DNA from: Lepidodermella squamata
Lineage: Eukaryota > Animalia > Gastrotricha
Direction: 5' to 3'
DNA length: 64,000 bases
NCBI GenBank assembly: GCA_047495785.1
Contig: JBLDXI010000057.1
Coordinates: 171,583 to 235,582, forward strand
The position numbers and the translations under genes were made by a program. Below the pieces are notes generated by a model that ran no database searches, was not told the DNA's origin, and saw nothing but the letters and a program-made list of their open reading frames with translations. Positions within the stretch are counted from its first letter, which is position 1; every line of letters begins with the position of its first letter. Of this stretch, positions 30,130 through 50,151 are shown in pieces.

Positions 30130-30171
30130 GGGTTAGGGTTAGGGTTAGGGTTAGGGTTAGGGTTAGGGTTA
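30130..30171 (+). repeat. Telomeric tract (GGGTTA)7
   Basis: Read directly. It merges into the internal telomere-like tract of family A. Confidence 0.97.
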
Positions 30172-31121
30172 GTAGGGTTAGTACTACGGTCCTCCGGTTC
30201 AATATATTGCAAATTTTCAAGCAAAACTTTCCACCCCGTGACCAAGTTGTCACGGAGGTTCGTGCTGGTCATTGAGGCGCAGGCTTGACGCCACGCGTTG
30301 ACGAATTCTTCACGCGGTTCGCCGAGGTTGATGCCGCGGGCCTTGCGGATGACCGTAACCGAGCTGCCTTGACTGCAGACGCTGTTGAAGGCGCGAGCGG
30401 TGTAGAGCGGTAGCGAGTCGGGGTCGCAGTAACGGAACGCTTGCGACGCGTCCTTGTAGGCAAAGTAGGCTGCACCTGCGTGAGCCCAGCCGGAGCGGAG
30501 GCGAAGCGAGGTGACGGTGGCGGCGGCGAAACTGTCGCGTTCTGCAACGACTTTCGGGTCGACGAGCGAGTCTGTGGGAAAGAATTTGTTCATGCCATTA
30601 ATAAAATTTCTTTCATGTGGCGTGTAGCCGCCGCTGTTAACAGCAGTGCTAATGCGCGCCCGAATAATAAAATGATTAATAAATGATGCAAGCTTGGCCT
30701 GATATCGCTCGAGGATATCGTGACGGTGCTGTTGCTCGAGCCGTTGACGACGGTTAGAGGGCGGTGGTGACGCGTTCCTTGGAGCACGATTGCTCGGAGC
30801 GGGCGGACGCTGCTCTCGCCATGAGCGGTCGCGATAGCGGTCTTCTCGGTCTTGAGGACGGTCTTCGCGGTAGTAATGGCGGTCGTCGCGGTAGCGATGA
30901 CGGTCTTCGCCACGGTGACGGTGTTGTTGTCGATGTTGATCGTCTTGTTCGCGGTAACGCGATTGAGACGGCGTCGGTGGTTGACGACGGCGACCGGCTG
31001 TTGATGTCGAATTGTGGTAGACATAACGGAAGCCGCCAATGTAAGCGCGCTTCGCCGGATCGTTGTTGGCCGTGGTGAACCCGTTGTAATTATTTGCAAC
31101 AAAGCGATTGTGATTTGACAT
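30160..31121 (-). pseudogene. 3'-truncated copy of family A ORF1 running into telomeric repeats
   Basis: Matches the first ~320 aa of ORF 33826-35931, then reads (NP)n from CCCTAA repeats. Confidence 0.9.
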
Positions 31122-31143
31122 TTATCAAGATTTATTTATACTT

Positions 31144-31177
31144 TCAACTAACGCGTTTCAAATTTCATCAGAGTTGA
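31144..31177 (-). ncRNA. Minimal type I hammerhead ribozyme (family A, copy 1)
   Basis: UCAACU-CUGAUGA-AAUUU-GAAA-CGCG-UU/AGUUGA: 6-bp stem I, intact core, vestigial stem II, palindromic stem III (AACGCGUU). Confidence 0.85.
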
Positions 31178-32153
31178 GTGTGAAAACAGAACGATTCGTC
31201 GTTGTATTTAACATAGCGAAGCTGCGCCTACTTGGTCCAGGTAAGATCGTGTTAGGCGCAGCCTCTTAGCGCAACAGCTGTACATTAATTAACAATAATC
31301 TGTGTGTAACGAGGCGTTGACTAGGTGTGGCGCGGCAGATGGCGAAAACAGGTGTGCGCCGAGGTGCTGTAATCCCTAATCCCTAATCCCTCGCAGGTGC
31401 TCGGGTGATCACGAGCGGATTAACAGAAGGGAGCGAGAACCGATAATCATTAAGCTGTAGTTAAGTCCTGATGACTGCCGGCGTTGAGAACTAGTCGGAA
31501 AGAGGTTTGACGGACGTAACAAATCGATAGCGAAGAAAAAATCCGGCGTGACCATGGGGCGCAAAAGTAGGCAATTTATCAAAAACTTGTAGAAGTGCAA
31601 CAGTTGCAGCCGAGGTGTGTTTCTAGATGTAAGAGACCACGGAGAGCTCAAAAATCGAGGTCCCAGACTCACACGAGCTGGCGTTTGGAAGTAAACATCA
31701 AAATACAAAAATATTTTCGGTTTTTCCCGGATTTCGTGAAAACTAAGTCGAAAATCAAAATTCGAAGATCGGAGCAAAAAACTACATCATATGACACATC
31801 CAAATATGTTAATCATTAAAACGTGGTCATACTTTCATATTAGTGAGCTCGCAGTTTTTGCCGTTTTACGCGAAAACGGTGAGGATTGGCGATCAAACAA
31901 CAGTAACGTGACCCATATGTTTAGAACAGACCACGCGGAATCGATTGGAACTATTTCCCGGGAGAGTAGGTGTCACGGTTAACGAGATAATCGACTTTTA
32001 CGAAAATAAATTTTGGTAAAGTGAGCGGAAGGGCGCGTAAGAGCGCACAAAATTAATTTCAGTGACTATTCACACGTTTCGCAACATTACAACATTATTA
32101 CAGATCAATTGAGCGAAAGATTTTTGAGACGAAAAACTTTGAGCCAAAGCACG

Positions 32154-33893
32154 CTAACAGTCTTTAGTGCGGCAGAGCTGCTTGACCAGCGACGGGCCGA
32201 GGTGTGTGACGACGCGATGCCGGTGCCGTTTGGCGACGTCGAGTAGTGGCTGCAGACCGCGAACGAACTTGGTTTCGTGCTCCGGCCGCCAGTCACGATC
32301 GACCGGTCGCGAGTCAGCACGGTGTCGTAGAAACGGCCAGTCGAGGCCGGCGCAGCCGTCGACAACGCTGCGGCAGATTGCGAAGACGTCCGCGTCGTGA
32401 TAGCCGTACTTGCTGGCGGAGGCGGCGAGACTGAACACGGCCGAGGCCAGGTCCTGTGTGTTGTTACAAATTCGAACAAAATTAAGTAAACGACCAGAAA
32501 TAGCTGCACGTAAGGTGGAAAGAGGGTGATTAGAATCTGCGTGCAATAAAGGCAGCGCATTCATAGGCTTAAAGTAAACCCCTGTTCGAATTGAACCGTC
32601 TTCAAACTTCTGCATTCGCACGTCGAGCACGTTTGCACAGTCGTTGCTGATGTCGATTTCCAGTTTGATGCGAGGGTGCAGCGCGCTGTAGCCATTGCCC
32701 AGGTTGACGGCGGCTTCGTGGCTGGTAGCGACCGCGAAAATGTCGTCTCGGTAGCGTTTAAACAGTAGGAGGCCCTCGGAGCGGGCGACGAGGTCGCGTT
32801 CGAGAACGAAGAGAAAGGCGTCGGCGACGACGGGCGCGGTGTTTGACCCCATCGGGATGCCGTGCACTTGCCGATAACGAGCGCCTGCAAACAGAAAAAT
32901 ATTGAATTTAAGCGTGATTTTTAATATTTCGACAACAAGATGGCGTTCTGCTTGAGACCCGATACTGTTCTCGCGCAGTAGTAGCTCGATGGCGGCGATG
33001 CCTTCGTCGATCGGGACGTTGGTGTAGAGGTCGCTGACGTCGGCGGTGAAGAATGTAGCGTCGAGACCGCTTGTGTCGATTGACCGTACCGCTGATAACA
33101 GGTCGATAGTAGAGATCGCACACGTCGTCATGAAGTAATTCAGCGGTTTACAGAAGGCGGCGGCGACCTTGTCTGCGGCTGCGAGCGCGGTACCTAGGCA
33201 GTCGACGATCGGGCGAATCTTCGGTAGACCATCGACGTCGTTCGGTTTATGCATTTTCGGTAAGAAGTAGATGTACCGGTCACGCGTTGGCACGAGGTCG
33301 AGACCGCGGAGCAGCTTGCGTTGCGCCGCGGTACCTGAGGCGTTGATTCGCTCGACCAGAGACTTCATTGCTTCCAGCCCGGCGGTTGACTCGTCTTCAG
33401 TGGCGTTGACGTAGTTGGCGGTTGACAGATGCTTCGTTGCCATTTGGTTGTAGTCTTCTTTCTTGAGATAGACCATGGCCGAGCCCTTGTCCGACTTCTT
33501 AAAGACGCCGTTGTCGCGGAGCGCCTTGAGTCGTCGCAGCTGCGGGTCGTCGTTGAGCGGGCCGATTGTGAGCGTTCGGGCAGGCTGAGCGTGACGGATG
33601 ACCACTTGGCCGTTGATGCCTATGATAGGCCCTACGAAGCGTTTCGAGAACGGTACCGCTGGGACCGAGACGTCGTAGCGGTGATCGGCCCGCGGTTGGA
33701 CGGTTGCACCTAGAAGATCTGACATAGTTTTTAGTGAGGCAAATTTTTCTTTTTTAGTAAAATTTATAATTTTAAGGCCCCGCTCGAGTGCCTGTTTCTC
33801 GGCGGGCGCCAAACTTCCTGTCAGATCAATGACTGACGGTAGGGAACAGCGGTGAAGGCTGAACGCCGTACCATTCTGGACAAGGCACGACAT
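32154..33893 (-). CDS. Family A Penelope-like reverse transcriptase without GIY-YIG endonuclease
   Basis: YFLPKMHKP, IRPIV, TADVSDLYTNVP, QVHGIPMGS, RYRDDIF, and thumb GVYFKP..SNHP. The ORF stops shortly after the thumb. Confidence 0.93.
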   Translation of the reverse strand: MSCLVQNGTAFSLHRCSLPSVIDLTGSLAPAEKQALERGLKIINFTKKEKFASLKTMSDLLGATVQPRADHRYDVSVPAVPFSKRFVGPIIGINGQVVIRHAQPARTLTIGPLNDDPQLRRLKALRDNGVFKKSDKGSAMVYLKKEDYNQMATKHLSTANYVNATEDESTAGLEAMKSLVERINASGTAAQRKLLRGLDLVPTRDRYIYFLPKMHKPNDVDGLPKIRPIVDCLGTALAAADKVAAAFCKPLNYFMTTCAISTIDLLSAVRSIDTSGLDATFFTADVSDLYTNVPIDEGIAAIELLLRENSIGSQAERHLVVEILKITLKFNIFLFAGARYRQVHGIPMGSNTAPVVADAFLFVLERDLVARSEGLLLFKRYRDDIFAVATSHEAAVNLGNGYSALHPRIKLEIDISNDCANVLDVRMQKFEDGSIRTGVYFKPMNALPLLHADSNHPLSTLRAAISGRLLNFVRICNNTQDLASAVFSLAASASKYGYHDADVFAICRSVVDGCAGLDWPFLRHRADSRPVDRDWRPEHETKFVRGLQPLLDVAKRHRHRVVTHLGPSLVKQLCRTKDC

Positions 33894-35931
33894 GCCCGTC
33901 AGCCCTAGCGACGTTATAAAACGTGATCGCGGCTTCTCGATGCCTCCCTTCCTTGTCGCCGTGCTTTAAGGCGATGTGTTCGCATAGTGCGTTGATCGAA
34001 CCACGGTGAGGTCTGTGAAGACACACGGTGCCGTTCTTCTTTTTCTTGCCGCAGTACCAGAAGTGTTCTAATTCGTTCCATTCGACGCCGATTTCCGGGT
34101 CTTCTTTCTTCGTTTTCTGCCACCATTCGCGTCGGTACAAGGCCGTGATGACTCCGCGTTTTTGAGCGAACGTTTTCGGCGAGACTTGTTGCGCGTTGGT
34201 GTTTGAGCGTTTCGACTGACCGGGCGCGTTGTTGTAAACTTTCGATGCGGACGCGGCGTTTTCACCGTACATCTTCTTCGCGGGTACGGCCTTGGGCTTC
34301 GCTTTCGGAGCGACGGTCGAGATTGCTTGTTGTTTCGCGGTGGGCGGACGAGCTGTAGGCGACGGCTCCTTCTCTTCTTCTTGACGCCTCCGCTTCGACG
34401 ACACTGAAGGCGGAGGCGCGACCGGGTGGGTCACGCGTTGAGAGTTCGGCGTGAGCCCGAAGAAATCCGACGCGACCATGATAACATTTTCTCTAGGAAA
34501 AAGTGGGTTATTATTAATTAAAGCTTCGGCCGCTGTAGCGGCAGCCAGAAGCGCTGTGTCGCTCGCGGTATCGATGACAGGTGACGAGATCTTCCTCGGT
34601 GCGGCGGGCTGAACCGATTGTTCAGAGGCGCGTGTTGTGGTCGGAGTGATCGAATCGGTGTTGTTGTTGTTCGATTCGACGACGATGACGGGTGAGGCGT
34701 TGCGTGCGCTGGCCACGGCTGGCGGTGAGGTGGTAGGCGTGCGCGTTGTCGGAGCCTTGGCGACTGGCGCGGCGATAGGTTCGCTGTTCTTGACGATGGG
34801 TGAGGCGACGGCGGCGGCTGCTGGAGGCGCGGCCTTCGGTGTGACGTCGACGACGGAGATGCCTTCGCCGGTTTCTTCTTCGATCACTTGCATCGGAGAC
34901 GCGGGCTGTGCCGCGGGCGGTGCTTGAACCTCTGTACCCCTGGGAGGTACGCGGACCTGAGAAAGAAAAGGGTTAGGGTTAGTAGGGTTAGTACTACGGT
35001 CCTCCGGTTCAATATATTGCAAATTTTCAAGCAAAACTTTCCACCCCGTGACCAAGTTGTCACGGAGGTTCGTGCTGGTCATTGAGGCGCAGGCTTGACG
35101 CCACGCGTTGACGAATTCTTCACGCGGTTCGCCGAGGTTGATGCCGCGGGCCTTGCGGATGACCGTAACCGAGCTGCCTTGACTGCAGACGCTGTTGAAG
35201 GCGCGAGCGGTGTAGAGCGGTAGCGAGTCGGGGTCGCAGTAACGGAACGCTTGCGACGCGTCCTTGTAGGCAAAGTAGGCTGCACCTGCGTGAGCCCAGC
35301 CGGAGCGGAGGCGAAGCGAGGTGACGGTGGCGGCGGCGAAACTGTCGCGTTCTGCAACGACTTTCGGGTCGACGAGCGAGTCTGTGGGAAAGAATTTGTT
35401 CATGCCATTAATAAAATTTCTTTCATGTGGCGTGTAGCCGCCGCTGTTAACAGCAGTGCTAATGCGCGCCCGAATAATAAAATGATTAATAAATGATGCA
35501 AGCTTGGCCTGATATCGCTCGAGGATATCGTGACGGTGCTGTTGCTCGAGCCGTTGACGACGGTTAGAGGGCGGTGGTGACGCGTTCCTTGGAGCACGAT
35601 TGCTCGGAGCGGGCGGACGCTGCTCTCGCCATGAGCGGTCGCGATAGCGGTCTTCTCGGTCTTGAGGACGGTCTTCGCGGTAGTAATGGCGGTCGTCGCG
35701 GTAGCGATGACGGTCTTCGCCACGGTGACGGTGTTGTTGTCGATGTTGATCGTCTTGTTCGCGGTAACGCGATTGAGACGGCGTCGGTGGTTGACGACGG
35801 CGACCGGCTGTTGATGTCGAATTGTGGTAGACATAACGGAAGCCGCCAATGTAAGCGCGCTTCGCCGGATCGTTGTTGGCCGTGGTGAACCCGTTGTAAT
35901 TATTTGCAACAAAGCGATTGTGATTTGACAT
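33826..35931 (-). CDS. Family A ORF1 (701 aa): R/D-rich N-terminus, helical domain, P/A/T-rich linker, C-terminal C2H2-like zinc finger
   Basis: Continuous ORF containing YCGKKKKNGTVC...LCEHIALKH; overlaps the RT ORF in the +1 frame. Confidence 0.85.
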   Translation of the reverse strand: MSNHNRFVANNYNGFTTANNDPAKRAYIGGFRYVYHNSTSTAGRRRQPPTPSQSRYREQDDQHRQQHRHRGEDRHRYRDDRHYYREDRPQDREDRYRDRSWREQRPPAPSNRAPRNASPPPSNRRQRLEQQHRHDILERYQAKLASFINHFIIRARISTAVNSGGYTPHERNFINGMNKFFPTDSLVDPKVVAERDSFAAATVTSLRLRSGWAHAGAAYFAYKDASQAFRYCDPDSLPLYTARAFNSVCSQGSSVTVIRKARGINLGEPREEFVNAWRQACASMTSTNLRDNLVTGWKVLLENLQYIEPEDRSTNPTNPNPFLSQVRVPPRGTEVQAPPAAQPASPMQVIEEETGEGISVVDVTPKAAPPAAAAVASPIVKNSEPIAAPVAKAPTTRTPTTSPPAVASARNASPVIVVESNNNNTDSITPTTTRASEQSVQPAAPRKISSPVIDTASDTALLAAATAAEALINNNPLFPRENVIMVASDFFGLTPNSQRVTHPVAPPPSVSSKRRRQEEEKEPSPTARPPTAKQQAISTVAPKAKPKAVPAKKMYGENAASASKVYNNAPGQSKRSNTNAQQVSPKTFAQKRGVITALYRREWWQKTKKEDPEIGVEWNELEHFWYCGKKKKNGTVCLHRPHRGSINALCEHIALKHGDKEGRHREAAITFYNVARADGHVVPCPEWYGVQPSPLFPTVSH

Positions 35932-35953
35932 TTATCAAGATTTATTTATACTT

Positions 35954-35987
35954 TCAACTAACGCGTTTCAAATTTCATCAGAGTTGA
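35954..35987 (-). ncRNA. Minimal type I hammerhead ribozyme (family A, copy 2)
   Basis: Same sequence as 31144-31177; ends 22 nt upstream of the ORF1 ATG. Confidence 0.85.
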
Positions 35988-36198
35988 GTGTGAAAACAGA
36001 ACGATTCGTCGTTGTATTTAACATAGCGAAGCTGCGCCTACTTGGTCCAGGTAAGATCGTGTTAGGCGCAGCCTCTTAGCGCAACAGCTGTACATTAATT
36101 AACAATAATCTGTGTGTAACGAGGCGTTGACTAGGTGTGGCGCGGCAGATGGCGAAAACAGGTGTGCGCCGAGGTGCTGTAATCCCTAATCCCTAATC

Positions 36199-36219
36199 GG
36201 GTTAGGGTTAGGGTTAGGG

Positions 36220-36260
<41 letters not shown>

Positions 36261-36285
36261 GGTTAGGGTTAGGGTTGGGTTAGGT
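36199..36285 (+). repeat. Telomeric tract capping A and priming B
   Basis: About 14 TTAGGG units with a few variants. Confidence 0.97.
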
Positions 36286-36289
36286 TAAT

Positions 36290-36331
36290 TACCAGACGGG
36301 AAGCCTAAGCAACCCCGGCATAGAAGCTCTA
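36290..36331 (-). other. Conserved structured element adjacent to the telomere-priming tract (B1)
   Basis: TACCAGACRGGWAGCCTAAGCAACCCCGGCA..RGCTCTA is shared by B, C and D (also at 42463, 47187, 53076, 60594, 62387) while the flanks diverge. Confidence 0.75.
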
Positions 36332-36575
36332 GCAATCCCTTTCACTCTTTTGACGGTAATAAAAACGTTTTGCGTACCTGTCAATCCGTTGATTAGCACC
36401 AGTTGAGATTATTTCAAACAATTTCAATAATTTCCTAAGAAAGAGATTAAATATAATTGAATGTTTGAACATGAATAAGTGTTCTCAAGTCGAGGGTCAC
36501 TGTAGAACCATAAATCCAGGTTCAATCAAAGGAGACCTTGAATGAACCGGGATCATAAATGTAGAATTGAAAATG

Positions 36576-37130
36576 TGGTAGAACCATGTCTTAAGGTTAA
36601 ACCAGAAGGAAGAAGAAGACCTTGGTTGAACCAAAACCATAAAGTTGAGGTTGCAAATACGGGTAGAACCATAACTTAAGGTTGAACCGAAAAGGAAACC
36701 TTAATTGAACCAAAACTATGAAGTTGAGGTTGCAGATATGGGTAGAACCGTAATTTTAAGGTTAAACCGAAAAGGAAACCTTAACTGAACCAGAACTATA
36801 TAGTTAAGGTTGCAAATATGGGTAGAACCATAACTTAAGGTTAAACCGAGAAGGAAACCTTAATTGAACCAAAACTATATAGTTAAGGTTGCAAATATGG
36901 GTAGAACCATAACTTAAGGTTAAACCGAGAAGGAAACCTTAATTGAACCAAAACCATAAAGTTGAGGTTGTAAATATGGGTAAAACCATAATTTAAGGTT
37001 AAACCGAAAAGGAAACCTTAAACTGAACCAGAACTATAAAGTTGAGGTTGCAAATATGGGTAGAACCATAACTTAAGGTTAAACCGAGAAGGAAACCTTA
37101 ATTGAACCAAAACTGTGAAGTTAAGGTTAC
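36576..37130. repeat. About 80-bp tandem repeat (~7 units) in the family B UTR; second copy at about 42749-43303
   Basis: Repeated unit GGTAGAACCATAACTTAAGGTTAAACCGAAAAGGAAACCTTAATTGAACC... Confidence 0.9.
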
Positions 37131-37177
37131 CGTTCCGTTTTTCAAAGGAGAAAAAGGAGAAAAAACCGTAACAATAC

Positions 37178-37319
37178 GCCACCCATGAAGGGGAGCAAAG
37201 AATCAAAGGCCACCCGTATAGGGGAGCGGAAGGAGGCACGCCACCCGTAAAGGGGAGCAACAAAGCAATAGCCACCCATGAAGGGGAGCAATAATTAAAA
37301 GCCACCCGTAAAGGGGAGC
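37178..37319 (-). repeat. Short-hairpin array (GCCACCC-N4-GGGGAGC type) x5, family B
   Basis: About 31-nt periodicity; copy in B2 at +6173. Confidence 0.85.
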
Positions 37320-37420
37320 ATACGGAGAAAGAGCTCAACGTAAAGGTGAGCAAACTGGAAACAACGCCCAGCCGGGTTACCAGACAGTATTGGTAAGAAC
37401 AGGAGGTCAAAAGCACGCAA

Positions 37421-37474
37421 CGCCCATATTAGTCAGACCGGTTTCGCCTGTGGGCAGCAGGCTCGTCAGTGACT
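37421..37474 (-). ncRNA. Type I hammerhead ribozyme with putative loop-II pseudoknot (B1)
   Basis: AGUCA-CUGACGA-GCCUG(CUGCCCA)CAGGC-GAAA-CCGG-UC/UGACU..UGGGCG. Confidence 0.93.
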
Positions 37475-37526
37475 TTGTTGCGAAAATTAAATTTTGCGAA
37501 ATGACGAAAAGTCAGATCTTAAAGCC

Positions 37527-37582
37527 TTTATAAAGGGCTGTTATCTGGACGCCATTTTGAATTTTCAAAATTTGGCGCGAAA
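37527..37582 (-). promoter_or_regulatory. Putative Pol II promoter (E2F-like site, YY1-like site, TATA) upstream of the hammerhead, B1
   Basis: On the - strand: TTTCGCGCCAAA, AAAATGGCG, TTTATAAA. The same order and similar spacing occur in C and D. Confidence 0.6.
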
Positions 37583-38190
37583 GTTTGAGATTTATTTTCC
37601 CAAAATAATGTTATTTCCTGATTGGTAATCATGTGAGGGGTATAACTGGAGTGTTTCACGTAAAAAATGTTCAATTAATTGCCGCATGTTTTTCAAGGTC
37701 GTTGCCATTTGTGGTATCTAGTAAGTTTGCCTAACATGTTTGGTATCAGGTGACCGGTTACGGTTGTGGGTCCAAGTCCAGGAAAACCAAAACCTTGGTT
37801 TTTTGGGTTCTGTTATGGTTTTTATACATTTAAGGTTCATAGGTTTTTGGTGCAGTAACCCAAACTTTAACGTTAAGGTTATGGTTGACGTTATGGTGTT
37901 TTTCAGAATTATGGTTCTAGTTCCGTATCACACCAATTCCCAGTTTACGGTTCGATTTCTCATCTGTAATGTGTCACCAGGGTTGGGTTGCAACCATAAT
38001 TTTCGGTTTTTTTCGGTTGTTGGAGTTGTATGCCGTTTTGCAGGTTCGGTTTTTATGGTTTCACAAGTCGATTTTTTACAAAAGCGATCCACATTTTATT
38101 TCAGAGTTCCTTACCAGGTGGTTTAGAGAAAAACAAAAACACACCATAGCATCGTTACAAACATATTCACTGGAGGTAAGGTTGAGTCAC

Positions 38191-39269
38191 TTAAACTTTT
38201 TTGAGGAAATGGTTGATCAATTCCTCACGGCGTTTGAGCAGCGCCGTTACTTGGTCCATCAGAAGTGGGTGCGTTTCACGGAAATGCGTTGTCAAGCCAT
38301 CACGACGACCGGACCAGGGGGGCGAGCAACCCCTAACGAGGCAGGTCAGTTTCTTTTCACCCGTTTTATCGAAAAGCAATCGATCTTTCCAATCTGGGTC
38401 GTTCTTCAAATGAGCGAAGGCTTTAAGCTCGGCTAGATAGCGCGCCGAGCCTCCGGTAGGGCGTTTCGCAGAGCCCGGGGTGGTTTGAGAGGTCCCCGGC
38501 ACCGATGCCGGTGTTGTCAATGGCCGTTCTATCGAAGTAACAAAAGTAATTTGTGGAAAAGGTGAGAGAACCAGTCACTTACTTGATTTGAGGGCATCGA
38601 GGAATGTATTCTTGCATTCCAACTGTCTTTTCCGCGGTAGTGGCGTGATAATCGGCATACGTTCGACGAGAACCGCTGCCACCATCGGCTGTGTTTGTTC
38701 AGCCATACCGTTGGTTGTTTCGCCCGATGGTTCTTCATCCGCGGTGTCCTTATCGCTCTCGAGCGTAGTCGTAATTTCGACTACCGCAGATTGTTCAGCT
38801 TCGTCTTCCTCGCTGGATGTTTCGAACCCTCCAACATCGTCCGCTTCGCTGATCGTACGTGCTCCAAGGAGGTCGTTGAAGGCACGTTCGGACATGAGGT
38901 CCGCGACATCAGTGTCGGCCAAGTGACCGGCACCTGAAGTTCCAGCCAGATCCATCGGTGTTGCAGGTCGGTTAACCTCCGGTTCCAAAACCGGTGGCGG
39001 AGCAGCAGTGTCCTCAACTCGGCTGGCCGCGGGGGGTCCGCTTTCAACCAGTTGCGTAGCTGTAGACGGGCCAGCGCTGTCATCAAACTGACTAGATGAA
39101 GCCGCATCTATTCCGACGGCAGTTGTTCTGTGTTGGCATGGCAATGGCGGAGGGCGACTAGGGCGGCCAATGGTGACATTTTGAGGTAAGGGACCGCGCC
39201 ATTGATCCGTTCCAGCCCAACGTTTTGGGTCCGTGACCAAGCCTAGGCCAAAGTCCCAGTTGGGCCAAT
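38191..39269 (-). CDS. Family B downstream exons (38583-39269, 38191-38528): acidic disordered region plus C2H2 zinc finger
   Basis: Intron 38529-38582 (GTAAGT..AG) joins the two ORFs in frame; CLVRGC-x13-HFRETH. There is no ATG of its own; the region begins at a TTTTAG acceptor. Confidence 0.82.
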
Positions 39270-39448
39270 CTAAAATTAACTCACGAGTAAAGTGTTTGGG
39301 GAAATGATATGTTGCTGTTTCAATTTATTTACAACCAAAACTTAGGTCACGAGTCATAGTCAAAAGTGTCAATTATCACTTGTATTGTCTTGGAATCCGT
39401 TTGTTGTTGTTGTAGTTGTTGTAGATTAGCCTGTAAACGAACTTATAA

Positions 39449-42341
39449 TTAACCTATAAATTCAGACTTAGTGTATCTTTTTCTGTTGTTTTTGTTTAGT
39501 TTCAGAGCCAGTCGTCCTTTCTGACGAATTAGCGCGTAAGCAGGTTCCAGTGTTTTTACGTATGTTACTACGTTCACCGTTTCATACTTCTGCTTTTTGC
39601 TTTTGGCTTTGATAAATGGCCAAGGGGTGCCTTTCAGTTTCCTCAAGGTATTTTTGATTGTGCTAATTATGAGTGCCCAGGGGTAATCCCTTTTGAGGAG
39701 GCTGTAGCAGAGGGAAAGAGTGGCCGTGGCCCAATCTTCGAAGTTTGAGCAGATTCTGCTATATCGGAGAATTTGGGACTCAATGATGCCTGAAAAAATG
39801 TGGTCAGGGTGCTCCGAGCCATGACATAGAAGTGCCATGTTATCGGTCGGTTTAAAGTAAACCCCTGTTTCGATTTTACCATTTTTCTTATACAGAAAAA
39901 TGTCCAAGTATTGAGCAGACTTATCTGAGATATTCACCTCAAGTTTAATGTTTGGGTGAAGGGTCTTATAGTCCTCCAAGAAGGCTGATGAGCGGTGATT
40001 GTCGAGGAAGATAGTAATTAGATCATCGAGGTATCTACACCCCAGTGGTGGGGAGTAAATTACCCAAAGGTTTCTTTCCTTTATGAAAAGCCAATTGTTA
40101 GCCACCCAGGGGGATAGGTGACCCCCCATAGCTAGTCCTTGTATTTGACGATACCATTTATTGTTGAACTTCACCGTGCTAGAGCTAAGGACGAGGAATA
40201 TAGCTCGGCAGACGAGCCGTCTCTCGTCGTATTCGAGGACTTCAAATTCCCTAAGGTAGGCCGCGATTCCATCTACAGCCTCGTGGAGGGGAATTTGGTT
40301 GTACATGTCGGTAATGTCCGCTGTGGTGATGACTGCATTTCGCAAGTCCTTTCCACTAGCGTTCAAATCCCTGATCTTTTGTAGGACCTCCACGCTACTA
40401 TGTACAACCGTGGTGAGGGTGTGCCTAGCTTGCCGGAGATTCCTGTAGAGGGTTTTATCGGCTTGCGAAGTATAGGTGTTGGTGCCATCGGTAATTGGGC
40501 GGACTTTGAGTAAATTTTCGTTGTCTGGGGGCTTGTGTAATTTTGGTAAGAAGTAGATGTATTTTGTGCGTATCCTGTCTATCTTTTTGAAAAGGCCTTT
40601 CCAGTTTTTCAAAGTATTTGGTGATAGGATGACCCAAGATGATCTTAGCCTGTGTAGGGCGTTTCTGTATTCCGCTAAGCCATCATCGTTGACTTCGCGA
40701 AAAGTTTGGGCATTCTGGAGAAATTTTTCCCCCATGCGACAGTAGGTTATTTTGTTGATTGCAATGACTACATTTCCCTTGTCGCTTTTCGTTACCCAGG
40801 TTCCCTCGGGGACTGTAAGTTCCTCGTTGTCAACTTTAGATAATTCACGCTCAAAAGAATAGAATAGATCACGGCGGGATTTTCGAGTCAAGTTGATTTT
40901 CAATTCCACAAATTTCTTTTCAACATCAAGTAACGTTTTTCTCATGTCTTTCCTATTGACTTTTACGAATTGGAGTCCTTTGGAGAGGGCTTCCTTGAGA
41001 TTGGTTGGCAGTTTCTCTGTTAGATCTATAACCCCTCGTTTTTCCCATTTTTTATTCTCTGCAGAAAGCGAAAGGGCTGGTTGAGAGGAAGTATGAATTG
41101 GTAGCCTATTGGAGAGTGAACTCTCTGATCCAAAAATAGATGATGAAAGGCCCGGGAGATCTTCAAGTATAAGCAGATCCTGGAGGTGACAGTCTATCAG
41201 ATGCCTCCAAAGTTTCCTTTTATTAGTTATATTGGTTGAATGTTCGTTACAGGTGGTGGTAATTATTCCATTGTTCTCAGAGGATGAGATACTACGATTC
41301 GGGTGACCCGGTTCGAATTTAGATGTAAAGAACCATAAAGAGGGTTTGGAAAATAGTGCGTTGATGAGAGTTTTGGTGTTGCATGTTTCTCCAAAAAGGT
41401 TTTCCTCGTGTAGAGTTTCCCAAGTGATTGGTTTGATAATATTAGGAACAGAAATTCTCCTACCTGAACTGACTGTAATGCCAGGGGCAGTCAGGGGTGC
41501 AGTCGGTGTTCCGCCAGTACTGAGCTCAACAGACAACTTTTCATCAATCAAGTGAAGAATGGTTTGAAAGCGTGCGGGTGGATCCGATGGCAGCGTCGTC
41601 CAATCTTGAGCAAGCATTGCCTTTGCGGCACGGCAAATTGCAGCTGCATCCAAGGTTTTGCCTTGTGTTTGCGGTGCGGTGATTAGAGGGAACGGTTTCC
41701 AGTTGAGAAGTATATCGGTTTGAAATGTGAGACTTGAACGATCTGCGGAGCGCCATGAAGACAGTATGGCATCATCGATTGAGCCACGGATGGAGGTCGA
41801 CGCTGATTCATAAATCGGCTTCAAGTCCAGCCACTTTTCAGCAGTGGAAGCCATGGACGCGACGATTTTCAAGCGTTCCTGTTCCGCCACGGCACGAATA
41901 GACACTTCAATTGTATCGTTCACCAGTCCTGGCCACTTTATGAACGCGTGGCACATCATGGCCTCCGCAAGCTAAGGATAAGACAGAATATTAGGTTATT
42001 TTCGATATTAAGGGGGTTAAGTGACTTACTTGTCGAACCACTGTGTTACCGGGGCTGAGGCCCGCAGACTTGGCTTTGTACCCGGCCATCATATTAAAGG
42101 TGGTGATGGCCATTGGCCAAAACGAGTTCAGGACATTAAGTGCTTGTTCGATAAGATCACCACCAGTGCGATTTGACGGTTGCCAGGAACTAAAAGCGGC
42201 ATGGAGAACGTTGGCGACGTCGTTGTTTTGGTCGACCCTAGGTTCATCTGCTTTGTTTCCCCCGTTATGAAATCGTTTAACGGGACCGCCGCGACCGTGA
42301 CCATTGTTGTTCCGATTACGATGGTTATTTGGCATACTCAT
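39449..42341 (-). CDS. Family B RT polyprotein (944 aa after removing intron 41972-42029), no endonuclease
   Basis: YFLPKLHKP, VRPITDG, TADITDMYNQIP, QIQGLAMGG, RYLDDL, GVYFKPTDN..SEHP. The spliced junction VVRQ/LAEAMMC aligns with uninterrupted family C AVRDIAKIVC. Confidence 0.93.
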
Positions 42342-43593
42342 TTCTAGGAAGAGAATGTAAAATATTAGGATGGCTTAGAGGTGTGTGATGAGGGACCGTC
42401 TCAGAGTTAGGGGATCGCCGTACTCACGACACGAGCCAGTGTTAGGGTTGGGTTAGGTTAATTACCAGACGGGAAGCCTAAGCAACCCCGGCATAGAAGC
42501 TCTAGCAATCCCTTTCACTCTTTTGACGGTAATAAAAACGTTTTGCGTACCTGTCAATCCGTTGATTAGCACCAGTTGAGATTATTTCAAACAATTTCAA
42601 TAATTTCCTAAGAAAGAGATTAAATATAATTGAATGTTTGAACATGAATAAGTGTTCTCAAGTCGAGGGTCACTGTAGAACCATAAATCCAGGTTCAATC
42701 AAAGGAGACCTTGAATGAACCGGGATCATAAATGTAGAATTGAAAATGTGGTAGAACCATGTCTTAAGGTTAAACCAGAAGGAAGAAGAAGACCTTGGTT
42801 GAACCAAAACCATAAAGTTGAGGTTGCAAATACGGGTAGAACCATAACTTAAGGTTGAACCGAAAAGGAAACCTTAATTGAACCAAAACTATGAAGTTGA
42901 GGTTGCAGATATGGGTAGAACCGTAATTTTAAGGTTAAACCGAAAAGGAAACCTTAACTGAACCAGAACTATATAGTTAAGGTTGCAAATATGGGTAGAA
43001 CCATAACTTAAGGTTAAACCGAGAAGGAAACCTTAATTGAACCAAAACTATATAGTTAAGGTTGCAAATATGGGTAGAACCATAACTTAAGGTTAAACCG
43101 AGAAGGAAACCTTAATTGAACCAAAACCATAAAGTTGAGGTTGTAAATATGGGTAAAACCATAATTTAAGGTTAAACCGAAAAGGAAACCTTAAACTGAA
43201 CCAGAACTATAAAGTTGAGGTTGCAAATATGGGTAGAACCATAACTTAAGGTTAAACCGAGAAGGAAACCTTAATTGAACCAAAACTGTGAAGTTAAGGT
43301 TACCGTTCCGTTTTTCAAAGGAGAAAAAGGAGAAAAAACCGTAACAATACGCCACCCATGAAGGGGAGCAAAGAATCAAAGGCCACCCGTATAGGGGAGC
43401 GGAAGGAGGCACGCCACCCGTAAAGGGGAGCAACAAAGCAATAGCCACCCATGAAGGGGAGCAATAATTAAAAGCCACCCGTAAAGGGGAGCATACGGAG
43501 AAAGAGCTCAACGTAAAGGTGAGCAAACTGGAAACAACGCCCAGCCGGGTTACCAGACAGTATTGGTGAGAACAGGAGGTCAAAAGCACGCAA

Positions 43594-43647
43594 CGCCCAT
43601 ATTAGTCAGACCGGTTTCGCCTGTGGGCAGCAGGCTCGTCAGTGACT
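43594..43647 (-). ncRNA. Hammerhead ribozyme (B2)
   Basis: Same sequence as 37421-37474. Confidence 0.93.
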
Positions 43648-44363
43648 TTGTTGCGAAAATTAAATTTTGCGAAATGACGAAAAGTCAGATCTTAAAGCCT
43701 TTATAAAGGGCTGTTATCTGGACGCCATTTTGAATTTTCAAAATTTGGCGCGAAAGTTTGAGATTTATTTTCCCAAAATAATGTTATTTCCTGATTGGTA
43801 ATCATGTGAGGGGTATAACTGGAGTGTTTCACGTAAAAAATGTTCAATTAATTGCCGCATGTTTTTCAAGGTCGTTGCCATTTGTGGTATCTAGTAAGTT
43901 TGCCTAACATGTTTGGTATCAGGTGACCGGTTACGGTTGTGGGTCCAAGTCCAGGAAAACCAAAACCTTGGTTTTTTGGGTTCTGTTATGGTTTTTATAC
44001 ATTTAAGGTTCATAGGTTTTTGGTGCAGTAACCCAAACTTTAACGTTAAGGTTATGGTTGACGTTATGGTGTTTTTCAGAATTATGGTTCTAGTTCCGTA
44101 TCACACCAATTCCCAGTTTACGGTTCGATTTCTCATCTGTAATGTGTCACCAGGGTTGGGTTGCAACCATAATTTTCGGTTTTTTTCGGTTGTTGGAGTT
44201 GTATGCCGTTTTGCAGGTTCGGTTTTTATGGTTTCACAAGTCGATTTTTTACAAAAGCGATCCACATTTTATTTCAGAGTTCCTTACCAGGTGGTTTAGA
44301 GAAAAACAAAAACACACCATAACATCGTTACAAACATACTCACTGGAGGTAAGGTTGAGTCAC

Positions 44364-45442
44364 TTAAACTTTTTTGAGGAAATGGTTGATCAATTCCTCA
44401 CGGCGTTTGAGCAGCGCCGTTACTTGGTCCATCAGAAGTGGGTGCGTTTCACGGAAATGCGTTGTCAAGCCATCACGACGACCGGACCAGGGGGGCGAGC
44501 AACCCCTAACGAGGCAGGTCAGTTTCTTTTCACCCGTTTTATCGAAAAGCAATCGATCTTTCCAATCTGGGTCGTTCTTCAAATGAGCGAAGGCTTTAAG
44601 CTCGGCTAGATAGCGCGCCGAGCCTCCGGTAGGGCGTTTCGCAGAGCCCGGGGTGGTTTGAGAGGTCCCCGGCACCGATGCCGGTGTTGTCAATGGCCGT
44701 TCTATCGAAGTAACAAAAGTAATTTGTGGAAAAGGTGAGAGAACCAGTCACTTACTTGATTTGAGGGCATCGAGGAATGTATTCTTGCATTCCAACTGTC
44801 TTTTCCGCGGTAGTGGCGTGATAATCGGCATACGTTCGACGAGAACCGCTGCCACCATCGGCTGTGTTTGTTCAGCCATACCGTTGGTTGTTTCGCCCGA
44901 TGGTTCTTCATCCGCGGTGTCCTTATCGCTCTCGAGCGTAGTCGTAATTTCGACTACCGCAGATTGTTCAGCTTCGTCTTCCTCGCTGGATGTTTCGAAC
45001 CCTCCAACATCGTCCGCTTCGCTGATCGTACGTGCTCCAAGGAGGTCGTTGAAGGCACGTTCGGACATGAGGTCCGCGACATCAGTGTCGGCCAAGTGAC
45101 CGGCACCTGAAGTTCCAGCCAGATCCATCGGTGTTGCAGGTCGGTTAACCTCCGGTTCCAAAACCGGTGGCGGAGCAGCAGTGTCCTCAACTCGGCTGGC
45201 CGCGGGGGGTCCGCTTTCAACCAGTTGCGTAGCTGTAGACGGGCCAGCGCTGTCATCAAACTGACTAGATGAAGCCGCATCTATTCCGACGGCAGTTGTT
45301 CTGTGTTGGCATGGCAATGGCGGAGGGCGACTAGGGCGGCCAATGGTGACATTTTGAGGTAAGGGACCGCGCCATTGATCCGTTCCAGCCCAACGTTTTG
45401 GGTCCGTGACCAAGCCTAGGCCAAAGTCCCAGTTGGGCCAAT
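44364..45442 (-). CDS. Family B downstream ZnF exons, copy in B2 (orphaned from their upstream exons)
   Basis: Duplicate of 38191-39269 at +6173. Confidence 0.7.
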
Positions 45443-45621
45443 CTAAAATTAACTCACGAGTAAAGTGTTTGGGGAAATGATATGTTGCTGTTTCAATTTA
45501 TTTACAACCAAAACTTAGGTCACGAGTCATAGTCAAAAGTGTCAATTATCACTTGTATTGTCTTGGAATCCGTTTGTTGTTGTTGTAGTTGTTGTAGATT
45601 AGCCTGTAAACGAACTTATAA

Positions 45622-47060
45622 TTAACCTATAAATTCAGACTTAGTGTATCTTTTTCTGTTGTTTTTGTTTAGTTTCAGAGCCAGTCGTCCTTTCTGACGA
45701 ATTAGCGCGTAAGCAGGTTCCAGTGTTTTTACGTATGTTACTACGTTCACCGTTTCATACTTCTGCTTTTTGCTTTTGGCTTTGATAAATGGCCAAGGGG
45801 TGCCTTTCAGTTTCCTCAAGGTATTTTTGATTGTGCTAATTATGAGTGCCCAGGGGTAATCCCTTTTGAGGAGGCTGTAGCAGAGGGAAAGAGTGGCCGT
45901 GGCCCAATCTTCGAAGTTTGAGCAGATTCTGCTATATCGGAGAATTTGGGACTCAATGATGCCTGAAAAAATGTGGTCAGGGTGCTCCGAGCCATGACAT
46001 AGAAGTGCCATGTTATCGGTCGGTTTAAAGTAAACCCCTGTTTCGATTTTACCATTTTTCTTATACAGAAAAATGTCCAAGTATTGAGCAGACTTATCTG
46101 AGATATTCACCTCAAGTTTAATGTTTGGGTGAAGGGTCTTATAGTCCTCCAAGAAGGCTGATGAGCGGTGATTGTCGAGGAAGATAGTAATTAGATCATC
46201 GAGGTATCTACACCCCAGTGGTGGGGAGTAAATTACCCAAAGGTTTCTTTCCTTTATGAAAAGCCAATTGTTAGCCACCCAGGGGGATAGGTGACCCCCC
46301 ATAGCTAGTCCTTGTATTTGACGATACCATTTATTGTTGAACTTCACCGTGCTAGAGCTAAGGACGAGGAATATAGCTCGGCAGACGAGCCGTCTCTCGT
46401 CGTATTCGAGGACTTCAAATTCCCTAAGGTAGGCCGCGATTCCATCTACAGCCTCGTGGAGGGGAATTTGGTTGTACATGTCGGTAATGTCCGCTGTGGT
46501 GATGACTGCATTTCGCAAGTCCTTTCCACTAGCGTTCAAATCCCTGATCTTTTGTAGGACCTCCACGCTACTATGTACAACCGTGGTGAGGGTGTGCCTA
46601 GCTTGCCGGAGATTCCTGTAGAGGGTTTTATCGGCTTGCGAAGTATAGGTGTTGGTGCCATCGGTAATTGGGCGGACTTTGAGTAAATTTTCGTTGTCTG
46701 GGGGCTTGTGTAATTTTGGTAAGAAGTAGATGTATTTTGTGCGTATCCTGTCTATCTTTTTGAAAAGGCCTTTCCAGTTTTTCAAAGTATTTGGTGATAG
46801 GATGACCCAAGATGATCTTAGCCTGTGTAGGGCGTTTCTGTATTCCGCTAAGCCATCATCGTTGACTTCGCGAAAAGTTTGGGCATTCTGGAGAAATTTT
46901 TCCCCCATGCGACAGTAGGTTATTTTGTTGATTGCAATGACTACATTTCCCTTGTCGCTTTTCGTTACCCAGGTTCCCTCGGGGACTGTAAGTTCCTCGT
47001 TGTCAACTTTAGATAATTCACGCTCAAAAGAATAGAATAGATCACGGCGGGATTTTCGAG
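45622..47060 (-). pseudogene. 5'-truncated family B RT (B2)
   Basis: Matches the C-terminal half of the B1 RT; broken at 47060 by telomeric repeats. Confidence 0.9.
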
Positions 47061-47092
47061 GGTTAGGGTTAGGGTTAGGGTTAGGGTTAGGG

Positions 47093-47133
<41 letters not shown>

Positions 47134-47182
47134 GGTTAGGGTTAGGGTTAGGGTTAGGGTTAGGGTTAGGGTTAGGTTAGGG
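47060..47182 (+). repeat. Telomeric tract capping B and priming C
   Basis: About 20 TTAGGG units. Confidence 0.97.
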
Positions 47183-47714
47183 AAAATACCAGACAGGTAG
47201 CCTAAGCAACCCCGGCAAAGAGGCTCTAATGCAGTTCAACCCGAATGAATTTTTTAAAAATAAACGTGAGCTTACCATGTTCGTTGCTTCTTCCGTGAGA
47301 GTAAAGGCCGATAATACCCAAAGATTTTAACAGAATCTAAAATACAGAAACATACAAATTGTTAGTTACAAGTTAAGGTTACCAGAACCTTAAATAATTT
47401 GCTTTTCAATAGATTGTCAACGTGGACACTAACCATAAGTGATTATAGGTATGTCTCGAAAAGGATAGGGTGTGAACCTTAAGTGGTTTACCCTATACCG
47501 GCTATTCCGTATTTAAACATCTCAAAGTTGAGGTCGAGGCCGAATAGGATTTATGGTTCGCAACCATATCCGGTTACATAGTTCAATCCGACCATAAGCA
47601 TATGAACCTTAACTTAGGTTAAGCTTTAGAGACTACTTCCTTAGTTCAGGGCTCTTGCTGAACCCTAAGTTATTTAGGGTCAGGATACCTTAAGTCAACC
47701 TGAGCAGCCCAGGT

Positions 47715-47948
47715 GCCACCCCAGTTGCGGGAAGCGTGTTTCCAAATGCCACCCATTAGAGGGAAGCCAACCGATTCTGCCACCCGTTGGAGGGAAGCTA
47801 CAAATATGATGCCACCCGTTAAAGGGAAGCCACGAATGTAATGCCACCCGTTGAAGGGAAGCCGAAAAGGTTACGCCACCCTCGTAAGGGAAGCCGACAA
47901 CAAAATGCCACCCATTAGAGGGAAGCTAAGCCACCCGTGGAGGGAAGC
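47715..47948 (-). repeat. Short-hairpin array (GCCACCC-N5/7-GGGAAGC) x8, family C
   Basis: About 32-nt periodicity; copy in C2 at +5889. Confidence 0.87.
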
Positions 47949-48017
47949 ACCCGATAAATTAGTTGCGGAGCGGTATGCGGTGTAATAACCTAATGTAATA
48001 CGAGAGATAGTAAGCAA

Positions 48018-48070
48018 CGCCCATAGTGCCAGACCGGTTTCGCCTGTGGGCGGCAGGCTCGTCAGTGACT
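48018..48070 (-). ncRNA. Hammerhead ribozyme (C1)
   Basis: GUCA-CUGACGA-GCCUG(CCGCCCA)CAGGC-GAAA-CCGG-UC/UGGC..UGGGCG. Confidence 0.92.
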
Positions 48071-48124
48071 CTAGTTGCTTAAAACAAAATCCGCTCAAAT
48101 GATGAAAATGTTCGAAAATAAGGC

Positions 48125-48190
48125 TTTTTATACTGCGGTCCCTTCCGCCATTTTGGAAAAAATCGTGGCACGTGGGTTTTGGCGCGAAAA
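48125..48190 (-). promoter_or_regulatory. Putative promoter (E2F-like, E-box, YY1-like, TATA), C1
   Basis: On the - strand: TTTTCGCGCCAAA, CACGTG, AAAATGGCGG, TATAAAAA. Confidence 0.62.
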
Positions 48191-48804
48191 TTTTTCTAGA
48201 AACTGATGTTATTTCCATAACCCAGTGCTAGTGGTTAGCTTATTTCCAACGGTTGAAACGTTTTGGAATTTATTAGCCGCAGGTGATTTCAAGGTCGTTT
48301 AGCCGCAGGTGATAGACTTAGAGTTAAGGTTTCATACTTATGGTTCGAGTTAAGGTTTCATACTTATGGTTCGCCTAGTCTTAGTGTTGGCGGTCTTCTG
48401 ACCACAAGTTAAATAACCGGCCGAATAGTCGTTTTAGGGTTGTCCTCGATAAGATAAGGTTCTTTTCAGTTCCGCTATTTGTTCAAGTCCCAAAACCTTA
48501 AGTTCTGGTTTCACACCGTAAGGTGGATTTAAGGTTACAGATATTCGTTAGTTTATTTCCACCTTCCTGAAGTGGATTTAAGGTTAGGGTCCTGTAGTTC
48601 GATTTCAATTTCCACGTTGATTCAGGTTGCCCAACCTTAAGTTGTTACTTAAGGTTACGGTTTCTGATTATCTTCGGACCCATTTGTTTCTGTTTCATTC
48701 TGCCTGGAGTTAAGGTTCACACGGTTGTAAAAGTCGTGAATTAGTTCAACAATGTGTTTTATTTCAGAAACTTCATCACTCACACTCACTTGACACAAAT
48801 CACC

Positions 48805-49982
48805 TCAAAAGTCACCCTTCTTCAGGATCTCAGCGCGGAGACGAAGACGTTCTTCATCCAGTGCTTGGGCCTGGACTAGCTGGTCTTTCTCGTGGTTCTT
48901 CAAGAAGTGTCCAAGTAGACCGTCCGACCTAGTGCAAGTGAACTTGCAGGATCCAATTCGGCAGAGGATGATCGATCCAGGCTTTTTGCCCGGGACCCGG
49001 GGAGCTTGCTCCACCCGTTCCCAGACAAGGGCGCCCTCGTAGTTCTCGCGCAGTTTTTCCCATGCAAGACTTTCGGCGACAGATCTAGCGGAACCTCCCG
49101 CAAGTCTCCGACCAGAAGTCGTGGGTCCACGGGCTGGAGTGCTGGCGATAGAGAATGAACAACCACCGGTCGATGACGACGAGCGTTCTGTGACAAGGTA
49201 AAGTTGAAGTTAAGGTTGCAATCTCCTTTAAAGAAATATCTTACCTTCCAAAGACGGAAGTGGTCGCTTGCGATTCGCCCTGTTGACTGTAGGCTCCGAT
49301 GTCGAAGCCATGGACACATTGTAGCGGGGTGCTGGCGATGAGGCTGCCGAACTCGTGGCGCTGCTGAATTCCAGTGGGGTTGAGGTTGCGCCTCCTCTCA
49401 GAGGTCGTCCGAACATATCGATATCTATGAAAAGATCGCGATCGAGGCGGACAACACAATCCTTAGTCGACAATCTCGGGTCTGGAGTTCCCAGGGTCGC
49501 ATCCGGCTGAAGTGTTGATTCCGAGGATGAGCTTTCACTATCTGAGCGTGAAAGCGCATCACGTGTCTCTTCGGGCAGCTCGTCCGCTGACATTTCAATA
49601 GCATCCTCGGTAGCCGATCTCACCGGAGAATCGGTTATCACGATGACGCCGCCCTGCTCCCGTTCCGGTGCTGCGTTGCTGGTAGCGGTTCCACCGTTAT
49701 CCTGGTCAGGCTTGGGATCTGCGTTGACTTGCTCGGTATCGTCGTCCAGCAGGTCAAGGGCTTCCTGGAGGGTAGCCGAGTCCGCGGCAGAGAAGCTACC
49801 CAAGCCGCTGAAAGTAGAAGCGCAAATTTCGGGACCATTGCTCGTCGATGGCAGCTCGAGCCTGTGACCAATGGTGACGGGCGAGGGGCACGGAGCCCTC
49901 CAGGCCGACTCAGGAGCCCAGCGACCGGTATCGTAGGTTGTCCCGAAGTTGAAGAATCTCCAACTCGGTGAAGCCGTGTCAG
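48805..49982 (-). CDS. Family C downstream exons (49245-49982, 48805-49187): disordered region plus C2H2 zinc finger
   Basis: Intron 49188-49244 (GTAAGA..CAG) restores the frame; GGSAR and the zinc finger CRIGSC-x12-HFLKNH align with family B; begins at a polypyrimidine TTTCCAG acceptor. Confidence 0.82.
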
Positions 49983-50151
49983 CTGGAAATGTTGTTATAG
50001 GGTTACGGGTATAAAGAAAAGGGTAAAAAGGCAAGTAAATTTGCACCAACTGTTTTATTTCTCACAAATGTTAGTATCATGGTGGATCATCGTCAAATGT
50101 CATTGTTCAGGGCCATAGTTGCGTTGAATGATGTCTTGTGTTGTTGTTTCT

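Follow-up and report, generated by a model that had tools for sequence, protein, structure and literature searches.

Telomerase has its closest relatives in the Penelope-like elements, about whose expression and replication little is understood. The endonuclease-deficient members of the Athena/Coprina kind (Gladyshev and Arkhipova 2007, as summarised in PMC8557442 and PMC13159263) carry a Penelope-like reverse transcriptase (RT) without GIY-YIG endonuclease, retain spliceosomal introns and have a first open reading frame (ORF1) with a basic N-terminus. They form head-to-tail chains at the chromosome end, with reverse-complement telomeric repeats at their 3' ends joined to the G-strand, and with 5'-truncated copies that are capped. 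The role of the introns in Penelope-like elements has been called unknown (PMC8557442). Here we analyse two element families, B and C, in a chromosome-end region of the gastrotrich Lepidodermella squamata (contig JBLDXI010000057.1, positions 171,583 to 235,582); this stretch of 64,000 nt is the window to which all coordinates refer. B and C share all the properties listed above with Athena/Coprina but differ in two respects. No hammerhead motif was detected beside the 3' repeats of B, and the RT lies within a 2.2-kb predicted intron whose removal would join ORF1 to an exon located 3' of the RT and encoding a finger-like domain (ORF3). We found no description of this RT-in-intron layout in the accessible literature, a scope that leaves out the primary Athena and Terminon papers, so that its novelty is provisional.

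The Terminons of bdelloid rotifers (PMC5408684, PMC5537684) resemble B and C in combining an Athena-type RT with co-oriented downstream ORFs, telomeric chains and C-rich 3' repeats. However, Terminons are units of tens of kb (up to 40 kb) with multiple accessory enzymatic ORFs, whereas the B and C units measure 5.9-6.2 kb and contain ORF1, RT and ORF3 only; no DEDDy, GDSL, Rep or GIY-YIG-like ORF of the Terminon kind was found in them. The telomeric repeat of the window elements, TTAGGG, also differs from that of Terminons.

The class of B and C, i.e. endonuclease-deficient Penelope-like elements of the Athena/Coprina kind, is assigned from described features rather than from placement in a tree: homology of the RT, a DKG motif together with YLDD, the absence of any endonuclease domain and the telomeric attachment. 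The Pfam model RVT_1 matches the 836-aa ORF of B weakly (20.1 bits for a cut-off of 29.6). A word-based protein search with this RT ORF gave just two weak matches, the better of which (P0001) has the canonical Penelope-like architecture, RVT_1 plus GIY-YIG. The exhaustive search gave 10264 homologues; the nearest, proteins from Logan, ENA and JGI assemblies, carry PF28514, PF00078 and PF26215 like P0001 but no endonuclease. Pfam finds RVT_1 only, and no GIY-YIG domain, on the RT ORFs of B, C and their relatives, and the RT ORF of B stops just past the region aligned to the RTs of these relatives (query residues up to 836). A phmmer search of the RT ORF against PDB sequences gave no match at E up to 1. 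The telomeric features of the Athena/Coprina type, namely reverse-complement 3' repeats, a junction with the G-strand and a 5' end directed toward the chromosome end, are all present. Rfam detected no hammerhead ribozyme over the window at the gathering threshold, nor with the limit relaxed to E 10 for 36150-36700 and to E 5 for the entire full-length copy B1, although divergent minimal variants could escape these searches. At both gathering and permissive thresholds no other Rfam family was found in B1 or at its 3' end.

We propose that the RT gene of B and C is probably nested within an intron of a structural gene, the whole forming one alternatively spliced and alternatively polyadenylated unit. 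A single weak phase-1 donor at the end of ORF1 (CAG/GTAGGA) would set the choice of product. If the 2194-nt intron is kept, ORF1 would be read straight into RT, giving a 944-aa ORF1-RT protein, and the unspliced RNA could end at an AATAAA just past the RT stop. If the intron is removed, ORF1 would be joined in frame to exons 3 and 4, giving a 614-aa protein devoid of RT, whose N-terminus is basic and whose acidic linker leads to a C2H2-like finger at the C-terminus; we take it as the nucleic-acid-binding, Gag-like protein of the element. The coupling of splicing to intronic polyadenylation would thereby fix, from a single promoter, how much structural protein is made relative to polymerase. 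Plain intron retention would yield ORF1-RT in B, C and one further family (L003, see below); in three others (L001, L002 and L004) a short proximal intron from the same donor would make the ORF1-RT fusion. We infer that the splice occurs, that it is partial, that the 614-aa protein has this role and that the short proximal intron exists in the three relatives.

The architecture of B1 and of the corresponding copy C1 (Table 1) agrees in each measured point with the original prediction made for these two families. The donor TCAG/GTAGGA is identical in B (41464/41463, codons S-S-G-R-R) and C (52176/52175, A-S-G-R-K), and the phase-1 acceptor TTTTAG of B, read directly, ends at 39270 with exon 3 starting at 39269. 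The intron is 2194 nt in B and 2193 nt in C (52175..49983). Counted from 41959 the donor of B is in phase 1 (41959-41464+1 = 496 = 165x3+1); the codon split by the large intron is G+AT, the phase being 1 on both sides, and the frame is kept after removal. Translated separately, each in the frame fixed by the running phase, the four exons of B (312+508+687+338 = 1845 nt) give 614 codons without internal stop, the last exon ending in a stop. The RT isoform has the predicted 944 aa, i.e. 104 aa from exon 1 plus the 840-codon open frame 41971..39452, and both AATAAA signals are present on the minus strand (39329-39324 and 38100-38095).

B and C are clearly diverged: exon 1 of B is 46% identical to C over 50 residues, exon 2 is 43% identical over 159 residues, and the 944-aa isoform is 59% identical to a 944-aa ORF of C. 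The first residues after the acceptor, said to align between the families, do so with 46% identity over 35 residues (E 6e-7). We scanned a B/C codon alignment of the first 1.1 kb of the ORF, where the background identity is 51%. The sole two 15-nt windows with at least 14/15 identical positions (of 1038) overlie the donor, in line with the predicted excess of nucleotide conservation at this place; synonymous sites are saturated between B and C (31-59% amino-acid identity). The small introns have stronger donors (GTAAGT) than the large intron (GTAGGA), which fits partial use of the latter.

The small introns behave differently from the large one. Intron 3, just upstream of the finger domain, has the same position and phase in B and C. 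L001 has a 57-nt phase-1 GT-AG intron within ORF1 (1871-1927), at a position unlike that of intron 1 of B; this indicates that the small introns are lineage-specific while the large intron is shared.

Five further families (L001-L005) were obtained from public assemblies by the exhaustive search, with RTs 27-45% identical to that of B. The sequencing runs behind L001-L006 include SRR30502329, ERR10802333 and SRR22038626. All have the order ORF1, RT, ORF3, and L002 and L005 end in CCCTAA-type repeats. The donor, whose conservation in further members had been set as a test of the idea, was found in all five as a phase-1 GT at the end of ORF1. Together with B and C, a phase-1 GT at the ORF1 end and a phase-1 AG opening the ORF3 frame are thus present in 7/7 families, and the implied large introns have similar sizes (2161-2250 nt). 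The position of each donor follows independently from where ORF1 ends. In L001, L002, L004 and L005 ORF1 forms a frame of its own, its stop codon lying 2-5 nt after the phase-1 GT, while in L003 it runs in frame into RT as in B and C, and the sole strong donor in the relevant 800 nt is in phase 1. The phase-1 AG sits 17-95 nt after the ORF3 frame becomes open in the seven families. AATAAA occurs between the RT stop and the acceptor in 6/7 families (P about 3e-4 under a conservative null), as expected from the poly(A)-signal conservation first claimed for B and C. The original argument that selection rather than chance maintains the donor, the phase and the poly(A) signals is thus supported, at the level of sequence, by their conservation across families.

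Three of these families suggest how an ORF1 with its own stop could be joined to RT. In L001, L002 and L004 the RT frame is open for 20-24 codons upstream of its first ATG, a stretch that includes the invariant N-terminal Trp of RT, and a phase-1 AG located 63-128 nt past the ORF1 donor would link ORF1 to this stretch; the predicted proximal introns measure 71 nt in L001, 128 nt in L002 and 63 nt in L004. This is suggestive only of one donor with two acceptors, the proximal one giving ORF1-RT and the distal one ORF1-ORF3. L007 (27% RT identity) was uninformative, as homology to neither ORF1 nor ORF3 could be recognised in it. A scan of JGI metagenomes with the RT alignment returned 41 loci, all at most 35% identical over the best matching segment, none with the ORF3 finger or telomeric repeats, and added no family members.

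The properties of ORF3 bear on the best surviving alternative, that the element consists of three separate cistrons and that ORF3 is expressed alone, with internal initiation at a Met further downstream, at a non-AUG codon or from a promoter within the element, so that GT and AG would resemble splice sites by chance. Multi-ORF Athena elements are known (PMC13159263), gene callers annotate ORF3 as its own gene in the relatives, and in L003, L004 and L005 an ATG lies 14-40 codons from the acceptor. However, 104, 129, 144 and 116 codons are open between the acceptor and the first ATG of ORF3 in B, C, L001 and L002 respectively, with a chance of 4e-3 to 3e-5 per family, and this ATG-less stretch takes in the 35 residues conserved between B and C. 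Separate cistrons would also leave as coincidences the ORF1 stop within the donor in 4/4 families with a separate ORF1, the phase 1 at both ends in 7/7 families, and the fact that the donor is the best-conserved B/C 15-mer in the first 1.1 kb of the ORF. A protein search with ORF1 of L002 gave no spliced-type product, as independent expression would predict. On balance we regard separate cistrons as unlikely.

Several observations weigh against the nested-intron model. The splice is a prediction from the DNA sequence, and the search with ORF1 of L002 for an ORF1-ORF3 fusion returned the query only. The acceptors were picked with the needed phase known, among several AGs per region, and are weaker evidence than the donors. 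The donors themselves are uneven: that of L004 is weak (5/9 consensus positions) and that of L003 was chosen by score and phase only. No proximal phase-1 acceptor is present in L005, the RT of which is interrupted by a single frame break. Past its first 35 residues exon 3 shows no conservation between B and C. For the finger, Pfam C2H2-type models match below threshold (E 0.007 to 0.24), and a two-sequence AlphaFold model of exon 4 has a hairpin and a helix at the right place but with low confidence (pLDDT 60.6); for these two reasons the domain is termed C2H2-like. Finally, no homology was detected between the ORF1 N-termini of B/C and those of the sister clade described below. Six families share the C-terminal domain of ORF3, in which five finger columns (R, D, G and two H) are invariant. 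The columns fit a Cys-Cys...His-His pattern, of which the two His and the R-x-D-G stretch are invariant.

The sister clade, represented in the window by family A (RT 32% identical to that of B), offers a comparison with the predicted spliced protein. ORF1 of family A is continuous (701 aa, 33826-35931, minus strand) and lies wholly upstream of the RT ORF (32154-33893). The same two-ORF layout, with an ORF1 of about 580-730 aa, is found in its relatives L006, L049, L050 and the P0010 contig. In profile-profile comparison (hhalign) the C-terminus of the A-like ORF1s matches the ORF3 finger with E 2.6e-5 over 75 columns, and that of L006 ORF1 matches the ORF3 finger profile with E 6.7e-6. With the window family A ORF1 alone the values are not significant (E 0.56 for the ORF1 C-terminal alignment and 0.2 for the finger alignment), significance being reached only through the A-like relatives. 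Family A and its relatives thus have the RT superfamily, the telomeric setting and the finger domain in common with B/C. In them the finger is the C-terminus of one continuous ORF1 and no large intron is needed, whereas in B/C it is encoded 3' of RT. The predicted spliced protein of B/C (N-terminal part of ORF1, disordered linker, finger) therefore matches the domain order of the unspliced ORF1 of the sister clade, which supports the spliced product as a real protein. Both clades coexist in at least one other host, since run SRR22038626 yields both L003 (B/C-like) and L006 (A-like).

This contiguous ORF1-plus-finger protein means that some rearrangement did happen, and one could imagine that the large intron is real but that an RT-only element inserted into the intron of another gene or element, the ensemble not being one functional unit; cases of Penelope-like elements that carry host genes with introns are known (PMC3846280). 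We consider this chimera very improbable. The unit ORF1-RT-ORF3-telomere-type 3' end is kept in seven families whose RT identity falls to 27-59%, and it was copied whole (B1/B2 and C1/C2 differ by 4 of 4623 nt and 1 of 5665 nt respectively). ORF1 is in frame with RT in B, C and L003, the linker being conserved as protein between B and C, and the RT part is not flanked by internal telomeric repeats or terminal structures. That translation passes out of the RT frame into ORF3, through programmed frameshifting or readthrough of a stop codon, is suggested by a 10-nt overlap of the RT and ORF3 frames in L002 and by the frameshift-separated ORF1 of some Penelope-like elements (figure legend in PMC8557442), but this route can practically be dismissed: in B the open frames lie 128 nt apart, with stops of the ORF3 frame in between, in C, L001 and L003 the frames are the same but two or more stops stand between them, and no consistent shift exists across families, 6/7 showing non-overlap or stops.

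The nested-intron model resembles two well-described strategies. In retroviruses the subgenomic env messenger is spliced from a 5' donor of suboptimal strength, close to the genome start, to an acceptor 3' of pol, the unspliced RNA serving for pol expression and as genome. B/C would differ from this scheme in producing an in-frame ORF1-finger fusion instead of a membrane glycoprotein, and they have no long terminal repeats (LTRs) and no integrase. In Ty1/Copia elements a short GAG RNA results from the coupling of alternative splicing and premature termination (Oberlin et al. 2017, PMC5580714; BARE, PMC3735527). The proposal for B/C is similar in that an intron removed from part of the transcripts, together with an internal poly(A) site, would ensure an excess of structural protein over enzyme. 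However, Ty1/Copia belong to the LTR class, their intron covers the protease region and the spliced RNA ends early, whereas in B/C the intron covers the whole RT and splicing would add a C-terminal finger encoded 3' of RT; the relation is one of analogy, not of membership. A broader reading, which we hold tentatively and rate slightly short of even, is that this retrovirus-like expression, with one donor and an intronic poly(A) signal between the two choices, is clade-wide, and that one gene order was possibly derived from the other when a spliced messenger was reverse-transcribed and, by template switching, joined to a template carrying RT.

A poly(A)-type hexamer also follows ORF3, 33-95 nt past its stop in 5/6 families. 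In B, C and L005 this hexamer is located 1.6-1.9 kb upstream of the telomere-type tail. If both poly(A) signals are used, neither messenger would contain the 3' priming region, which would leave a read-through RNA as the only possible template. Most of the long 3' region that follows has diverged between B and C, except one block, some 45 nt long and situated directly upstream of the telomeric repeats, that is near-identical in both (36275-36320 and 47178-47225). This block has no Rfam match and no significant fold: for the B/C conserved 3'-terminal block and the 31-nt repeats the folding z-scores range from -1.0 to +0.7, so that a structure is thermodynamically unsupported, and the natural 31-nt array of B shows no significant stability (z = -0.77). 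The 3' untranslated regions of B, C and a right-hand element contain repeated copies of a 31-32-nt unit whose short core is self-complementary (37172-37353, 47745-47926, 53634-53815, 61161-61245 and 62954-63038); this unit could be a protein-binding site.

Table 1. Positions of the elements and of their predicted features in the window (+ and - denote the strand; B1 unless another element is named).
Feature	Position	Strand	Remarks
(TTAGGG)n tracts	36199-36284, 47059-47182, 60390-60582	+	antisense element 3' end comes next on the plus strand
Family A unit	30159..36198	-	sister clade
Element B1, full length, 6173 nt	36265..42437	-	3' end passes into (CCCTAA)n, joined to tract 36199-36284
Element B2, 5'-truncated copy	42438..47060	-	joined to B1 5' end; capped by (TTAGGG)n at 47063-47177
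Element C1 (family C)	47165..53053	-	same layout as B1
Element C2 (family C), 5'-truncated only	53054-58718	-	1 mismatch to C1 in 5665 nt
Exon 1, 312 nt	42030..42341	-	ATG at 42341; Arg/Gly/Asn-rich ORF1 N-terminus
Intron 1, 58 nt, phase 0, GTAAGT...CCTTAG	41972..42029	-	no counterpart in C, where the ORF is continuous
Exon 2, 508 nt	41464..41971	-	C-terminal part of ORF1, ends at phase-1 donor CAG/GTAGGA
Putative large alternative intron, 2194 nt, phase 1, GTAGGA...TTTTAG	39270..41463	-	holds whole RT domain, RT stop and AATAAA
Read-through (unspliced) ORF1-RT frame	39449..41971	-	840 codons plus stop 39449-39451
Cys/His finger-like motif, N-terminal part of RT frame	41186..41251	-	similar motifs in C, L001, L002 and L003
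Region homologous to Penelope-like RTs	39470..40822	-	DKG motif 40772-40786, YLDD 40022-40033
Intronic AATAAA	39324..39329	-	120 nt past RT stop, 54 nt before acceptor
Exon 3, 687 nt	38583..39269	-	35-residue Trp-rich stretch conserved with C, then acidic low-complexity linker
Intron 3, 54 nt, phase 1, GTAAGT...ATAG	38529..38582	-	in-frame stops within
Exon 4, 338 nt	38191..38528	-	stop 38191-38193; conserved C-terminal domain, single C2H2-like finger ~38269-38343
Downstream AATAAA	38095..38100	-	91 nt past exon 4 stop
Long non-coding 3' region	36265..38094	-	repeats and block conserved with C
31-nt repeats of the 3' region	37172-37353	-	
79-nt tandem unit of family B 3' untranslated region	36577-37128 and 42750-43301	-	about seven copies
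C1 predicted splice sites	donor 52176/52175, acceptor ends 49983	-	finger exon within 48808-49187
C intron 3, 57 nt, phase 1	49244..49188	-	counterpart of B intron 3; in-frame stops within

From about 30 kb rightward the window is a head-to-tail chain of minus-strand RT elements spaced by (TTAGGG)n tracts. The order of tracts and 3' ends is that expected if a telomeric G-overhang primed the reverse transcription of an RNA ending in (CCCUAA)n. Self-comparison by BLAST shows that 36265-40887 of B1 corresponds to 42438-47060 of B2 with 99.9% identity (4 mismatches in 4623 nt), and the acceptor and intron 3 sites of B2 are identical to those of B1. B1 and C1 are apparently intact, with no stops or frameshifts in their predicted exons. 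Since they look intact and the copies are at least 99.9% identical, the host should offer transcripts that can be examined directly for the splice.

Other rearranged copies were observed in the chain. An inverted copy of the 3' part of C (58722-60393, 99.9% identical to 47912-49583) meets, head to head, the 5' end at which C2 is truncated; the tract 60390-60582 follows. Past this last telomeric tract, 60572-63989 contains a 1793-nt unit in tandem, with 100% identity over 1625 nt; the 32-nt repeat that it has in common with C indicates that the units are probably 3' parts of another element family. ORF1 of family A contains an internal telomere-like run coding for T-N-P-T-N-P-N-P (30127-30190 and 34969-35000, minus strand). 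The chromosome-proximal partial copy of A (31388..30159) ends exactly at this run and passes into perfect (CCCTAA)n, and it looks as if priming or healing took place at the internal run rather than at a true 3' end. The 5' end of family A carries two to three sense G-strand-like GATTAGG repeats (36178-36200 and 31368-31390, minus strand), and those at 36198-36202 come directly after the telomeric tract ending B1.

The left 26 kb of the window hold ordinary host genes of animal type: a P4-type ATPase and several paralogues of Cys-loop receptors, one of which has a ligand-binding-domain exon that exceeds the Pfam threshold. A protein search with a Cys-loop receptor exon returned no match at 1e-10. 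At least three paralogous Cys-loop receptor genes stand in a row beside the element array (4714-5535, 15034-18342 and 21352-23712), and the D2 repeats between them have 61-77% nucleotide identity. This level of identity among the paralogues indicates a subtelomeric gene-family expansion. An isolated (TTAGGG)3 is located at 26085-26102.

If the nested-intron model is true, a conserved intron that holds RT together with a poly(A) signal would give the introns of these Penelope-like elements a function, namely control of the ratio of structural protein to polymerase, and it would account for an ORF3 that lacks a start codon. Set against the sister clade, B and C provide a concrete, testable case of gene-order permutation in a retroelement. 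Template switching with a spliced messenger, if it did occur, would be a new way for domains to be shuffled in retroelements near the origin of telomerase.

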